From assembly GCA_977020255.1 (NCBI GenBank), contig CDROCS010001101.1, positions 124,001 to 188,000 of the forward strand: a DNA stretch of 64,000 nt. The letters are read 5' to 3'. Within the stretch, counting starts at the first letter, position 1. Every line of letters starts with the position of its first letter. Made by a program: the position numbers and the translations under genes. This document shows positions 5,245 through 36,356 of the stretch, one piece after another. This DNA comes from Obrimoposthia wandeli. Lineage: Eukaryota. The notes below the pieces were generated by a model. The model searched no databases. It saw only the letters and a list, made by a program, of their open reading frames with translations, and was not told the DNA's origin.

Positions 5245-5638
5245 ACCCAATATTAAGGCCTCAATACAGAGGTCTTTGTTTTATCTAAAACGCTATTTTC
5301 ATGTTGAATGTAATATCCAGGACTAGATTAAACAATCATTACCACTTTCCTAATATATAATTTAGACCATCATGCAGCACTATTTAAAGACAATACGATC
5401 GCTTTAATATAACAGTACTGAAAGGGGATCTTGATAGCTATAAAGTCATCTATCTTGTTACGTACAGAAGTTAGGATCACTTCGTGGTTTAATGGATAAT
5501 TTAAAGATACGTATTCAGTCAATATCTAGAATATTATTAGATCAAGAAGGTAACCGGCCAGTATAGAGTCGGGTGATGACTTGGGTCACAGAGGCCTTAA
5601 AAAAACAGAGCAGGGCGTGTTGAACCAAGGTTTTATTC

Positions 5639-5700
5639 GCGCGCTCTGTAAAATGTACCAGTGGTAACCGACAAAAACTTTCAGATTTCACACAGCACAC
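5639..5700. repeat. Degenerate copy (S1) of the recombinase-associated inverted-repeat site
   Basis: Arms GCGCGCTCTGTAAAATGT (13/18 match) and AGATTTCACACAGCACAC (15/18 match) to the 33360-33424 arm, separated by a 26-nt spacer. Confidence 0.55.
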
Positions 5701-6573
5701 GTGATTTATGCCTTTAAAAACAGACTTGTACTGGCTATTCAGATCTGAAGTCACTAATCGTTGATAACGATGAAAAAATGGTTTCGAGCCATACGGTTAC
5801 GAACGTTTAACATCTATCTAGACTATCATAAATATCGATTACAACGTGATAAAAATGCCTTAAAAAACATTACGTTCGTTAGGATATTAATAAAGTATAA
5901 GAACCATTTCGATGTCGTTGGTAGATGATTTTAAGATGAGCCAATATAGAGTAAATCGCATTATGCACAAGCTGAACAGAACTTAGCTAAGTTGTCAGCG
6001 GATAAGTTAGAAAAAAGAAACAGGGAAATTACATTGGGCAATAGAAAATATTGAGTCATCAATTTTGCCGTAGCTGCATCCAATATAGAGATGATGATGT
6101 TAGGAACATTTTTCATAAGCTTTAAAACGAAATGGATTAATACTGATAAAAGGTTGTTCATAACTGAATATTAGAGCCAGATTAGAGAGCATCACAAAAT
6201 AGCCAAAGTCCCATACTTCCGGAGTGCCGATACAGTGGTGGTTTAATCCAAAGTGAATCAGAACGAAGATACATTAAGAATACTAAGTGGTAGCAAAATT
6301 AGTTGAGCATTTCATAGTGCATTATAAAAATATTTACCGTGTGTATTGAATGATGAGATCTAAATGTGAGAGTTTGTTGGTGATCAGGGAGCTAACAAGA
6401 ATCCGGTAGCGATATATGAGCATCGACCAATATGTAGATTGTTTGAATCTACGAGGGAAAATAGCTTGAGGATTTCTACAGCTAGATCCACAGGCATACA
6501 AAGTTTTGGTTTTTATATGTCTGGATATATTTGATTACGTCATATTTTGGATAAAATATGATGTAATCATTTA

Positions 6574-6601
6574 GATGCATATCATATACTTTATGGTAAA
6601 T
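6574..6601 (+). other. Secondary dif-like XerCD site
   Basis: GATGCATATCA-TATACT-TTATGGTAAAT: XerD arm identical to that of 6690-6717; XerC arm 7/11 to E. coli dif; inverted relative to 6690-6717. Confidence 0.55.
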
Positions 6602-6689
6602 AAGACATGTGTTAAATACCAACCGAACCAATCCCAATAATTACATATCTATAAATAGAACGGGGCTAATTATAACTCCCACAAATCCT

Positions 6690-6717
6690 ATTTACCATAA
6701 TATACATTATGCGCAGT
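6690..6717 (-). other. dif: dif site (XerCD chromosome-dimer resolution site)
   Basis: Minus strand reads ACTGCGCATAA-TGTATA-TTATGGTAAAT: 25/28 identical to E. coli dif with the canonical TGTATA spacer; the XerD arm equals that of ColE1 cer. Confidence 0.82.
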
Positions 6718-6811
6718 GTTGTATAAACCCAGATAGAGGTGTCCGGTTTGAGATTATTGGTATTGATATCAAAATATTGTTCCTGGTACTTCATTCTGAT
6801 ATCAAAAACCT

Positions 6812-6873
6812 GTGCGCTACGTGAAATCTGAAAAGTTTTGCCAGTATAGTTACTGTAGATTTCACACAGCGCG
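6812..6873. repeat. Copy (S2) of the recombinase-associated inverted-repeat site
   Basis: Left arm GTGCGCTACGTGAAATCT is 18/18 identical to the 33361-33378 arm; 27-nt spacer; right arm AGATTTCACACAGCGCG is 14/18. Confidence 0.8.
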
Positions 6874-6877
6874 TTAT

Positions 6878-7129
6878 CTATTTAGCTGTTTGATTACTAA
6901 TGTTTTTATCTGATTTAAAGTATTCTAGTTCTTTCAATCTCGCGAATATTTTTGCATAACCAATGAAGTTTTGTTCATCACCATCGGTAACATCTGCTGA
7001 TAAAAGATCCTCATGCAGGAACAAAATTGATTCTTTAATATCATCAAGTCCAATTGATAATTCACTACTTGCTGTAAGACATTGTTCACCTCGACAATAA
7101 AATACAGCACTACCAGATACCATATTCAT
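6878..7129 (-). CDS. Hypothetical protein (83 aa)
   Basis: Only ORF in an otherwise non-coding stretch; weak RBS; ends 4 bp from site S2; no recognisable motif. Confidence 0.35.
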   Translation of the reverse strand: MNMVSGSAVFYCRGEQCLTASSELSIGLDDIKESILFLHEDLLSADVTDGDEQNFIGYAKIFARLKELEYFKSDKNISNQTAK

Positions 7130-15322: not shown

Positions 15323-15338
15323 CTGTATATATATACAG
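15323..15338. promoter_or_regulatory. LexA (SOS) box
   Basis: CTGT-ATATATAT-ACAG, a perfect gammaproteobacterial consensus. Confidence 0.8.
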
Positions 15339-15346
15339 CTAAAAAT

Positions 15347-15381
15347 AACCCCCCGTAAAATGATGACTTTTAACGGGGGTT
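15347..15381. terminator. Hairpin terminator downstream of the DEAD-box helicase gene
   Basis: AACCCCCCGTAAAA...TTTTAACGGGGGTT inverted repeat. Confidence 0.65.
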
Positions 15382-31152: not shown

Positions 31153-31392
31153 TTGGAACTTAAAGAATTAAAGGTTTTGTTTGATAATGGCGGCCTGAAG
31201 AAAATAACAGTAAAACGAGCACCTTTAATGAATGGTTATATTATCATAGCCCAAACAACGAATAAAAATGTGCACGTGATGACTTCTCAACGTGAAGAAT
31301 CCAATACACCAAGAGCATTTAAGACGATTGATTCTGCCGCTGCAAATGCACAAAAGATTGGTTTTAAGAAGATAAGTGTCGATTTCACGTAA
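31153..31392 (+). CDS. Small mobile-element protein (ParC/'RepB'-like partition-associated family)
   Basis: LKELKVLFDNGGL..APLMNGY...R..PRAFKTIDSAAANAQKIGF matches the ~80-aa family seen beside plasmid and transposon resolvases; TTG start with GAGA RBS. Confidence 0.55.
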   Translation: MELKELKVLFDNGGLKKITVKRAPLMNGYIIIAQTTNKNVHVMTSQREESNTPRAFKTIDSAAANAQKIGFKKISVDFT

Positions 31393-31404
31393 CAAGAATT
31401 TATA

Positions 31405-31420
31405 CTGTATATACATACAG
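31405..31420. promoter_or_regulatory. LexA (SOS) box within a 15-bp extended palindrome
   Basis: CTGT-ATATACAT-ACAG; GAATTTATACTGTAT / ATACAGTATAAATTC form a perfect inverted repeat (31396-31429). Confidence 0.8.
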
Positions 31421-31525
31421 TATAAATTCTACCCCCGTAAATATGGCACTTCACGGGCACTTTAACTCATAATTGAGTAACAACTGCCCATAATGAACAG
31501 CTATTTACTCATAATTAAGAGTAAT

Positions 31526-33210: not shown

Positions 33211-33359
33211 CAAAATGTCCTTATATCCCTGATTTAAACGTATCCATTTAATTCAATTTTAGCATAACTGTCATTACGTAATAGCATAAAAATCACCTTA
33301 ACATAGTCGTACTCAATTCTATTATTTCGTATAATTACTATATGAATGAGTCATTTACG

Positions 33360-33424
33360 CGTGCGCTACGTGAAATCTACTAGCTAGGATACGAAGCAGT
33401 ACTTCAGATTTCACGTAGCGCACG
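33360..33424. repeat. Perfect 19-bp inverted repeat with 27-nt spacer (S3), candidate recombinase site
   Basis: CGTGCGCTACGTGAAATCT-N27-AGATTTCACGTAGCGCACG, 95 bp upstream of the tyrosine recombinase start. Confidence 0.85.
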
Positions 33425-33443
33425 AAAAAACAAGCCATTTATA

Positions 33444-33459
33444 CTGTTTGCTTATACAG
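33444..33459. promoter_or_regulatory. LexA (SOS) box overlapping the probable -10 of the recombinase promoter
   Basis: CTGT-TTGCTTAT-ACAG overlapping TATACT (33440-33445). Confidence 0.7.
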
Positions 33460-33518
33460 TTGTTAATGCTATAATTGACGCGGTAATATTTAAGGTCTTT
33501 GATAAACGCGGATGTATA

Positions 33519-34607
33519 ATGCCTAAAGCATTGATAAATATAAATAATAATTCAATTGTAGCATCTAATAACTTAAGCGAAGAACACATTGAAAACCTCA
33601 TTAGGTTCAGTGATCGTAAAGAACAATTAGAAGAAAACACGCTAAAATCACTACATTTCCATGTCAGTAAATTTAATGATTATTGCGCTAGTCGTAATGT
33701 GATCCCCTTGCCTTTGCAAGATGCGACTGTACTTGAATCTTTCCTTATCAAAGAAAACGACCGTGGTTGTAAAGCACAAACCTTACGTATTTATGCATGG
33801 GCTGTTTCCAAAATACACAGTTTAGCTGGTTTAGAGATCCCTTATTTCAAAACCATTATTACCGCACGATTGAAGATAATATCAAAACAAGAAGTTAAAC
33901 TAGGTGTAAAACGTAAACAAGCCGTGGCCTTTTCTTATGACCACCTTAAATTTGTAAACGATAAACTTGATATCAATTCACTGCTTTCCATCCGCAATGT
34001 TTTACTATTGAACATTTGTTATGACGGTTTACTACGTGAAAGTGAAGCCTGTAATTTGTTTATCGATCAGATTCAAAAAGTGAATGGTCTATATAACATC
34101 AACATTACTAATTCAAAAACGGATAAGTCATTAGATGGTTCGATCGTACATTTAAGTAAATTCACCTCTAAATTACTGCCTTTATATTTACAAAAAGTAG
34201 CTGCACACCACGGCCAATTTCTGTTTAAACGTATTACTCCACGTGGTGGAAAATTAGAAACACTAAAGCTTAGCGATATAACGCCAAACCCGCACGATAA
34301 AGCAATATCGACAAAAACGGTTGAATTGGTATTTGCTAACACATGGCATACTATTACTGCACACAACCTAATGCTTGGTTTTGAAGATCATATTGATTTA
34401 CCGGAACGACCTTTTAGTGGTCACTCGGCACGAGTTGGTGCATCTTGCGATCTTGTCAGTGCAGGTTTTGATGACTCATTGGTAATGCGTGCGGGAAGAT
34501 GGAAAACATTAAGAATGGTTGAGCTCTATACGCGTGGTGTAAATAATAAATTTGCGACTGTCAGAGAATTTAGAGAACGACTAGAAACCATCACCAACAC
34601 CGAATAA
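33519..34607 (+). CDS. Cre/TnpS-like tyrosine recombinase
   Basis: N-terminal SAM-like domain and a full Cre-type catalytic set: R (LLRESE), K (SKTD), HxxR (GHSARVG), W (GRWK), Y (MVELY). Confidence 0.92.
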   Translation: MPKALININNNSIVASNNLSEEHIENLIRFSDRKEQLEENTLKSLHFHVSKFNDYCASRNVIPLPLQDATVLESFLIKENDRGCKAQTLRIYAWAVSKIHSLAGLEIPYFKTIITARLKIISKQEVKLGVKRKQAVAFSYDHLKFVNDKLDINSLLSIRNVLLLNICYDGLLRESEACNLFIDQIQKVNGLYNINITNSKTDKSLDGSIVHLSKFTSKLLPLYLQKVAAHHGQFLFKRITPRGGKLETLKLSDITPNPHDKAISTKTVELVFANTWHTITAHNLMLGFEDHIDLPERPFSGHSARVGASCDLVSAGFDDSLVMRAGRWKTLRMVELYTRGVNNKFATVREFRERLETITNTE

Positions 34608-34730
34608 ATCAAACCTCCTCGCACGCGATGGTAAATAATGGAAAGACATCCGCCTTTCCAGTCAGCCAACTATATTTCATCAATGTCATAAATAGTAATG
34701 CTATAAATGGCTACACTATAAATAGAAATG

Positions 34731-35126
34731 TTAACCATCTATTAGTTGAACCATTTCGTTTAGCGTAGCATGAAACATACAGCTTACATCATCATGGCTA
34801 AACTCATTGCCATTTAAGTTGACGGTGATTTCAGTGTCATCATTATCCGTTTCAACATACAGCGTGTTTTTAATTGTTGGATATTTTTCTAGCAACACAT
34901 TTTCAGCATGCTTTCGTGTGATCTTATTACTTAGGTGTACGGTAATAATCCCCGTCCCTAGCAACAGTTTATTCATGCCATGTTCAAAAACATCCGCAAG
35001 CATACCTTCAACAAACTGACTTTTTGAAACGTTACATTGTTCACTTATTGTTTCTAGTTTTTCGAGTAAGTCTTCGTACATTCTTATCGTGCTGTTCTTT
35101 CTGGTTGCGTCGGGCTTAATCTTCAT
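34731..35126 (-). CDS. Ribbon-helix-helix (CopG/Arc-like) DNA-binding protein
   Basis: STIRMYEDLLEKLETISEQCNVSKSQFVEGML has the beta-alpha-alpha RHH pattern; convergent with the recombinase gene. Confidence 0.65.
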   Translation of the reverse strand: MKIKPDATRKNSTIRMYEDLLEKLETISEQCNVSKSQFVEGMLADVFEHGMNKLLLGTGIITVHLSNKITRKHAENVLLEKYPTIKNTLYVETDNDDTEITVNLNGNEFSHDDVSCMFHATLNEMVQLIDG

Positions 35127-35986
35127 TTTTATACCATCGAGTCTATGAGTTAGCAAAACGCTATTTCATGTAAAATATCGTTTAAGTGAATACATAATAG
35201 CATAACTTTTAGTTTATTTATGAATAATAAAATAAAACAATTGTGCACAATATGACCACATAATGAGTTAGATGATGGCTCTTAATATAGATTGATAAAC
35301 GCTTAAAAACCCAATCTTAATGACAATTTAATTTTAAAAATAAATTATCTATATTAATAACTATGAGGGTACACTTACAATTCACACAACTACATCTAAT
35401 TAATTCATTGCTAAAACATTGAAATACAAGGTCTTTATTTCGTTTAACGGTCATTATACGAAATAAAGCTTGTTTTATATAATTACAGGTGCACCTTATT
35501 CAGATTTTAATATGTTCATAATATAACTGCATATTGAAATGTAATATAGAGTTATATTGAAATTAATAGTTGGTATAAATATTTGTTTATTTGTAATTTT
35601 ATATATCAATTATATGAGGTTTAAATAAGTGATAATTGGGTTTACTTTTATTTGATAGGCGGAATATATAGGAATACTTAAATTAGGACTATTTACATAA
35701 AATATGATGCCCTCTTCATTTAGGCTCATTTTTTTGATTTATGGGGGTCATTACCCATGATAATCATCAGAATTCACACACCGCGCCATAATAAACCTAC
35801 AACATCACATTTAAACAATATAAATCAATTACTTACACTTAAGTTGGTGGTTTTAAATGCCTGTTTTAAGCTTAATTTTACTGATATACAGACATATATT
35901 AAGTAAAAACCTATTTTCAAATAGAGTTCAGTGGAAATTACAATATTTATGCTCCTAGGACTAACCAGTAATAACACCTTTTAACA

Positions 35987-36002
35987 CTGTATATACATAC
36001 AG
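35987..36002. promoter_or_regulatory. LexA (SOS) box
   Basis: CTGT-ATATACAT-ACAG, between TTAACA and CATTAT (recA-like -35/box/-10 layout). Confidence 0.8.
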
Positions 36003-36356
36003 CATTATTTAAATCCCCGTAAAAGTATGACCAAAAATGGACATACTAATTAACGCTTTTAATTTAATCGTTGTAATACAACAACTTAAAAACAAGCGTT
36101 TAAAGGTAACTAATATATGAAAACGGTGACTAACTGAGTTTATGTTTGATTAATAGCAGTGAATTCCTTGTTATTATTACTCCTTGGTAAGAAAGTAACT
36201 TGTTAATATCCGACGTGTCCCTCAATAATCAGCACCGATAAATCAACTAAGCAAATATAATTCATTTAATATAGCGTCTACAATGGGAAGTAGAAAAGAA
36301 TGACGTTAAAATACGGACTTCATCATGACTACCTAAAATTGACCTTCAGGAACATA

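Follow-up and report, generated by a model that had tools for sequence, protein, structure and literature searches.

The window considered here, a stretch of 64,000 nucleotides (C1101:124001-188000, on a 709-kb bacterial contig of a 1.35-Gb multi-organism assembly), carries the gene for a Cre-type tyrosine recombinase, preceded by a long palindrome (S3) and a LexA-type box and followed, past a second gene, by a 34-bp lox-type site. Taken together, these parts probably represent a chromosomally fixed Cre/lox-type module of Moritella, in which recombination would take place at the single 34-bp site, expression would be governed by a LexA/S control region like that of the phage-plasmid P1, and two further palindromes of the S kind (S1 and S2) would be relics lying by dif. 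The recombinase and its site are a new chromosomal Cre/lox system, and the palindromes belong to a real and widespread family of cis-elements. Coordinates are collected in Table 1; the labels G000-G012 denote genomes (G000 being the source assembly), and L-numbers denote the loci compared.

The recombinase and its lox-type site

Homologues of the recombinase with 83-92% identity occur in Moritella (Moritella viscosa, M. dasanensis, Moritella sp. PE36, JT01, and one Moritella metagenome-assembled genome), and the contig is for this reason assigned to a Moritella chromosome. The source assembly itself behaves as a mixed or metagenomic one, with many bacterial contigs and four full IntI genes on contigs other than that of the window. 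The first-pass annotation had described an intact tyrosine recombinase with all Cre-type catalytic residues, and this description holds: beyond the Pfam match, residues 18-345 align to residues 18-332 of Cre with the N-terminal DNA-binding domain included (E ~1e-21; phmmer against the Cre chains of PDB), and Cre R173, E176, K201, H289, R292, W315, and Y324 are all matched in that alignment. The nearest plasmid-borne or annotated relative is VCre of plasmid p0908 (32% identity), followed at 26% by the Cre of P1/P7.

The module is resident in the chromosome. The recombinase gene is intact in all Moritella genomes examined, at one syntenic locus whose gene order is shared genus-wide (Na/Ala symporter, adenosine deaminase, MEKHLA gene, recombinase, ribbon-helix-helix [RHH] gene, EamA); its ratio of nonsynonymous to synonymous substitution (dN/dS) is 0.034-0.037, with synonymous sites saturated, and the divergence of both the recombinase and the RHH protein is similar to that of the flanking core genes. 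The recombinase, its RHH neighbor, and the lox-type site are vertically inherited and under purifying selection. As homologues of the RHH protein are 131 aa long, its gene probably starts at the ATG at 35126. Two marine metatranscriptome runs yielded contigs, 99% identical to the window, that extend over 33424-34693 and 34677-35165; because these RNA-library contigs span both genes and none of the flanking intergenic DNA, the recombinase and RHH genes appear to be transcribed. The recombinase contig ends at 33424, exactly at the base of the gene-proximal arm of S3 and upstream of the LexA-box promoter, which hints at a start or processing site there.

The 34-bp lox-type site lies 830 bp past the stop codon of the recombinase, with the RHH gene in between, and is the sole lox-like candidate within 3 kb of the recombinase (13-15-bp inverted arms, an 8-bp asymmetric spacer, and <=2 asymmetries). 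In every Moritella genome examined it is invariant, spacer included, in spite of the saturation of synonymous sites, and it forms an island of identity within intergenic DNA that is otherwise ~54% conserved. Each Moritella genome searched has a single copy, and that copy is in all cases next to the recombinase (G000-G004). Its eight inner arm positions, TTCGTATA, are those of loxP (P7 record), and its spacer, ACGGTCAT, is 7/8 identical to the VloxP spacer ACTGTCAT (plasmid p0908 record). A T at position 7 and GTATA beside the spacer are reported to be common features of active Cre-type sites (PMC10250229), and the Moritella site carries both. At every Cre-type plasmid locus inspected, a 13-8-13 site likewise lies near the gene. 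On these grounds, the 34-bp site is the probable crossover site of the recombinase.

Half-sites of the same type stand nearby, namely the solo copy to the left of S3 (Table 1) and, in one Moritella lineage, a second left half-site with an identical 10-bp left flank, 228 bp after the full site (L008 2133-2145); both look like relics of past events. Farther afield, at homologues of 60% and 30% identity, neither the S palindrome nor a lox-type site of the Moritella kind was found. The 60%-identical recombinase, from marine metagenomes, is followed directly after its stop codon by two 20-bp self-complementary copies, 25 bp apart (L029 4670-4734).

Table 1. Features located in the window (numbered from its first nucleotide)
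Feature	Position	Strand	Remarks
S1, degenerate palindrome	5639-5700	-	~1 kb from XerD side of dif; non-coding low-GC DNA; 26-nt spacer
Chromosomal dif site	6690-6717	-	25/28 identical to E. coli dif; central TGTATA identical
S2 palindrome	6811-6873	+	~95 bp from XerC arm of dif; 27-nt spacer
83-aa open reading frame in dif-proximal block 6509-7104	6878-7129	-	Block homologous (BLAST) to end of relatives' dif-integrated units
11-nt S half-site, then LexA box + CCCCGTAAA module	31381-31445	+	Module itself at 31405-31445
Solo lox-type half-site, 14/15 match	33321-33335	+	25 bp left of S3; not conserved in other species
S3, 19-27-19 palindrome upstream of recombinase	33360-33425	.	Homologous to element between loxP and cre in P1/P7
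Recombinase-proximal S3 arm + A-run	33407-33429	-	Only part of S3 invariant across Moritella (alignments, pair counts)
LexA-type box CTGT-N8-ACAG	33444-33459	+	18 bp after S3; overlaps -35 of TTGCTT-16-TATAAT promoter (by eye)
Cre-type tyrosine recombinase gene, 362 aa	33519-34607	+	Pfam Phage_integrase match; full-length Cre alignment
RHH (RHH_3) gene, convergent with recombinase	34731-35156	-	Pfam match; beside recombinase at every locus
Lox-type site, 13-8-13, one arm asymmetry, spacer ACGGTCAT	35434-35467	.	Probable crossover site
Solo S-type arm	35769-35787	+	~300 bp beyond lox-type site; position conserved in relatives
LexA box + 12 nt + CCCCGTAAA module	35987-36030	+	After solo arm at 35769

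The S palindromes, the control region, and dif

As first annotated, S3 is a perfect inverted repeat, with 19-nt arms at 33360-33378 and 33407-33425 and a 27-nt spacer. Across eight Moritella loci, conservation covers the proximal arm with its A-run (~22 nt), 10 nt of the spacer in one block, the promoter hexamers, and the LexA-type box; the remaining spacer positions and the distal arm have drifted. Pairing holds in only 76% of stem cells, with the six outermost pairs disrupted in 4-6 of the 8 species, and covariation is no better than in shuffles, so that constraint acts on the sequence of one arm and not on the hairpin. CTGT-N8-ACAG boxes number 7 in the window against 0.72 expected, and the one beside S3 is kept at all homologous loci, as CTGG in two; the earlier claim of a LexA box over the probable -10 therefore stands as to the presence and genus-wide conservation of the box, although the overlap, read by eye, is with the -35. 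The invariant arm, and S3 with it, may serve the cre-like control region in a sequence-specific way, whether regulatory or architectural. Other assignments were tried and rejected: a terminator (a T-run follows S2 only, and a terminator scan gave none at S3), an RNA family (Rfam returned hairpin noise only), and a G4-type priming signal (no similarity to the complementary-strand origin of phage G4).

The palindrome has a counterpart in a well-known system. P1 and P7 carry it between loxP and cre, with arm matches of 16/18 and 17/18, a 27-nt spacer, and spacer sequence alignable to that of S2; the -10 of promoter P3cre sits in the matching arm (P1 record), and a LexA binding site is annotated ~50 bp away (P1/P7). 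The palindrome thus does form part of a cre control region, and the earlier statement that no named system has such a 19-27-19 site is overturned; since the P1/P7 palindrome adjoins an annotated LexA site, an SOS-boxed Cre with a palindrome is already a feature of P1. A lox site, a LexA box, and the palindrome are hence common to two Cre systems despite a protein identity of only 26%. Among E. coli genomes, P1-type plasmids are essentially the only carriers of the S element, with one copy each, and neither the palindrome nor a LexA box was found at the other Cre-type loci inspected (VCre-like, Shewanella, and V. europaeus).

The proposed scan of this genome and its relatives found the arm motif in 11 of 13 Moritellaceae genomes (a reversed control gave 0 hits), whereas the strict two-arm pattern returned nothing from 401 sampled Gammaproteobacteria, a result of little weight, as the pattern was too strict and also missed G001. 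Elsewhere in G000, an unrelated repeat matches the motif in part, by chance. IncF and IncX4 plasmids and T7-like phages likewise carry the S arm, joined to the opening 10-13 nt of its spacer (sites outside Moritella: L047 464 and 1503, L049 1500, and L048 800). In the IncF plasmid, one copy is a full 16-27-16 palindrome; in the IncX4 plasmid, the arm lies at the 5' end of a tyrosine-recombinase gene, and in T7-like phages, including Yersinia phage Berlin, just upstream of a late gene. A literature search for the arm motif as a string returned nothing relevant. Judged by sequence, the S palindromes form a family of cis-elements of ~63 bp, with an invariant portion made up of one arm and the beginning of the spacer.

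Within the window, the 18-nt arm at <=3 mismatches occurs four times against 0.02 expected (both S3 arms; 6812-6829, 0 mismatches; 5683-5700, 3 mismatches), and the echoes at S2 and S1 that had been noted are thus real, as is their shared polarity, with GAA beside one arm and GT beside the other, S1 and S3 parallel and S2 inverted. Placement in the terminus region was also correct, because the dif site, which is kept in other Moritella genomes, coincides with a sign change of GC skew near 6 kb of the window. Here dif sits between S1 and S2, and the arrangement S1 - ~1 kb - dif - S2 is found again in G005. S2 lies ~95 bp from the XerC arm of dif in seven genomes besides (G001-G005, G009, and G012), and S1-type and S3-like copies populate the dif-adjacent stretch of G002, G003, G004, G009, and G012 (S1-type: G002, G004, and G009).

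The origin of these copies is best seen in G009, where two 4228-bp tandem units, 98% identical, follow dif, each starting at XerC-arm sequence and bearing S2. The unit encodes a replication protein (Phage_CRI + G2P_X_C), a gene-V-type single-stranded DNA-binding protein (Phage_DNA_bind), and an HTH_3 repressor, and its nearest relatives are Vibrio and Pseudomonas inoviruses; G009 accordingly shows at dif both an XerC-arm-bounded element and a filamentous-phage replication module, the hallmarks of integrative mobile elements exploiting Xer (IMEX). Because the tandem repeats begin at the XerC arm of dif, the units are attributed to Xer-dependent, filamentous-phage-like integration. The window retains only a dif-proximal relic (6509-7104) and low-GC non-coding DNA around S1, and no filamentous-phage replication genes remain in it. 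S1 and S2 thus appear to be relics that such dif-integrating elements left beside dif, and not partners in inversion or excision. The ~1.3 kb of non-coding DNA (33% GC; 5245-6508) that flanks dif has no equivalent at most of the other Moritella loci and has the look of decayed DNA from an integrated element. One observation agrees less well with this picture: in PE36, a 5.4-kb insert (L024 2529-8035) that does not include dif lies between 144-bp direct repeats centered on S2; it holds an AMP-binding/acyl carrier protein (ACP) enzyme gene and a 514-aa open reading frame, and no recombinase.

S-type arms occur in other company as well. The 11-nt half-site previously noted at 31381 is present, and a module composed of a LexA box, 12 nt, and an CCCCGTAAA hairpin recurs at 15323-15380, 31405-31445, and 35987-36030, and at L036 ~3996 and 5859. 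As the module follows an S-type arm in three cases (31381, 35769, and the S3-like copy of G009), the two seem to be parts of one kind of element. The arm motif is also found, 17/18 identical, inside the attC-type repeats (~190 bp) that belong to cassette arrays of PE36 and G005 (L021 3200-6100, L023 7300-9900, and L039 2300-6600), whose cargo includes MepB-like, GFA, and TIR-domain proteins; one relic of an attC-type repeat lies 9.3 kb before the window. The R''/L'' region of these repeats is dif-like, with an identical XerC arm. Their interpretation as arrays of dif-like sites was rejected on folding, which gave long attC-type sites with R''/R' boxes, and the likeness to dif is for that reason taken as the usual likeness between core sites. 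No IntI above the family cut-off was found in the PE36 draft genome.

Proposed mechanism and alternatives

By homology with Cre, VCre, and Vika, synapsis would most likely bring together four recombinase monomers and two copies of the 13-8-13 site, with strand exchange in the 8-bp spacer, and LexA control would be expected to raise expression after DNA damage. Because each chromosome holds one site and the module lies 20-55 kb from dif, the partner site would be found either on a sister copy, for the resolution of dimers or cointegrates, or on an incoming circle that carries a match, for integration; plausible roles are the resolution of sister-chromosome dimers or cointegrates and service as a landing pad for circles with the same site. 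Several observations weigh against this account. The Moritella lox-type site is downstream of its gene, with another gene intervening, whereas plasmid systems place the site upstream. Joints at S3 or the lox-type site were absent from four public runs, a weak negative in that these are contigs only, which lose rare forms. The linkage of palindrome and cre common to P1 and Moritella shows that the palindrome matters, possibly through a role in recombination such as that of an accessory site, and the 5.4-kb insert of PE36 would fit site-specific recombination at S2 itself.

The first-pass annotation had gone further, proposing that the recombinase cuts and rejoins at the 19-27-19 palindromes, with SOS-induced inversion between S2 and S3, excision between S1 and S3, or mobilization of the modules bounded by these sites. 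Such cleavage would agree with the association of palindrome and cre in both Moritella and P1/P7, with the PE36 insert, which is bounded by direct S2 repeats and holds no recombinase gene, and with gene content that varies between species immediately to the left of S3; the breakpoints of that variable region, however, lie ~35 bp or more outside S3. A 27-nt spacer is ill suited to Cre-type sites, which have a 6-8-bp overlap, and a canonical, more strictly conserved lox-type site exists, whereas the stem and spacer of S3 are not conserved, its hairpin is not maintained between species, and the spacers of S1, S2, and S3 differ from one another. For Cre in P1, the 34-bp loxP suffices. S1 and S2 flank dif and derive from dif-integrating elements, the G009 repeats bear the signature of Xer-mediated integration in starting at the XerC arm, and a flipped S2-S3 interval, as expected of an invertible segment or shufflon-type switch, was not seen, the relative orientation being identical in every genome and joints being absent from the four runs (contigs only). 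Use of the palindromes as crossover sites is, on this evidence, very unlikely.

A different origin for the palindrome, as a hairpin of filamentous-phage single-stranded DNA (a complementary-strand origin, packaging signal, or folded attP helper) whose S3 and P1 copies would be captured relics functionless in the cre locus, accounts for the position of S2 in the main intergenic region of inovirus-like units, beside a dif-type attachment site, for the S-like arm inside long attC-like repeats, which act as single strands, and for the strong folding of the perfect stems. It is nevertheless unlikely, given that one arm is invariant and the other drifts without compensatory change in both S3 and S2 copies, that S1 does not fold, and that copies in P1, IncF/IncX plasmids, and T7-like phages sometimes retain one arm only; moreover, an arm that stays invariant across a genus with saturated synonymous sites is not a neutral relic. 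The suggestion that the whole module is what is left, in decay and now functionless, of a P1-like plasmid-prophage that had integrated would explain why P1 has the same four parts (palindrome, LexA box, lox-type site, and cre), and why the surroundings are AT-rich and gene-poor with half-site relics nearby, but it has next to no likelihood for a gene that every genome keeps intact at a single syntenic locus, that has a dN/dS of ~0.035 and divergence equal to that of core genes, and that is transcribed along with its neighbor and accompanied by an invariant lox-type site and control region.

The S element recurs at comparable distances from recombination sites, ~95-100 bp from loxP in P1/P7 and ~95 bp from the dif-type attachment site in the Moritella filamentous-phage-like elements, besides its presence inside attC-like repeats. 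As a tentative and somewhat speculative extension, the ~63-bp element may be a cis-element not described before, one that keeps company with the core sites of tyrosine recombinases in unrelated mobile DNA and would be the target of a conserved factor, either of the host or associated with the recombinase; in Moritella it might link an SOS-inducible Cre/lox module, serving near the terminus in auxiliary dimer resolution or as a landing pad, to events at dif.

The fixed Cre/lox-type module is of interest on several counts. It places a Cre-type system in the chromosome, under strong purifying selection across a genus, near the terminus and behind a LexA-type box, so that the idea of a natural "second" system for resolution or integration, alongside XerCD/dif, can be tested; it also supplies a new orthogonal recombinase/site pair from a psychrophile. 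The palindrome, for its part, is common to dif-integrating phages and to the much-studied loxP-cre interval of P1, a region used by every Cre/lox laboratory.

Comparison with known recombination systems

An analogy with integrons (IntI/attI/attC) had been drawn, and the two do share a tyrosine recombinase with a LexA box and, in the cassette arrays of Moritella, an S-like arm inside attC-like repeats. The analogy fails in that the recombinase is not an IntI, an NCBIfam scan having given only weak Xer-type hits (<=24 bits) and none to integrase_gron (TIGR02249), and in that the R''/R' core boxes (..AAC / GTT..) are absent at S1, S2, S3, and the dif-adjacent copies, whereas the arrays have classical boxes of their own. 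A TnpS/TnpT-rst system, in which an rst site would separate the recombinase gene from a divergent TnpT partner, was likewise rejected: the divergent upstream gene is a MEKHLA-domain gene that differs between species, not TnpT, and the constant neighbor is the convergent RHH gene.

With regard to S1 and S2 only, CTX-phi/RS1-type IMEX offer the closest parallel, as G009 has tandem dif units that begin at the XerC arm and encode an RstA-like Rep, a gene-V-like single-stranded DNA-binding protein, and an RstR-like repressor, whereas the window has relics only. To our knowledge, IMEX have not been described as carrying an S palindrome ~95 bp from the attachment site. The single-recombinase dimer-resolution systems XerS/difSL and XerH/difH and the experimental replacement of dif by loxP in E. 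coli resemble the module in having one site per chromosome, beside its own recombinase, in the terminus region; as a point of difference, Moritella also has a normal dif, and its enzyme is of Cre type and not of Xer type, with a role predicted from sequence.

Cre-type systems have been described on phage-plasmids and plasmids, in which their task is to resolve multimers. VCre/VloxP of the Vibrio plasmid p0908, Vika/vox, Nigri/nox, and the YR series include the nearest annotated relatives and likewise have a 34-bp site near the gene (PMC3553980; PMC10250229), but their carriers are plasmids or degenerate prophages, the site is placed 100-750 bp upstream, and the loci inspected have neither S palindrome nor LexA box. 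Cre/loxP of P1/P7 shares the Cre fold and catalytic residues, a 13-8-13 site with the identical inner arm TTCGTATA, a LexA site, and the ~63-bp palindrome. The order of parts differs, being loxP, LexA box, palindrome, cra, and cre in P1 and palindrome (inverted), LexA box, cre-like gene, RHH gene, and lox-type site in Moritella, where the RHH gene stands in place of a cra homologue; the RHH protein was rejected as a counterpart of P1 Cra, to which it has no similarity. Above all, the P1/P7 system is carried on a phage-plasmid, whereas the Moritella module is chromosomal and vertically inherited.
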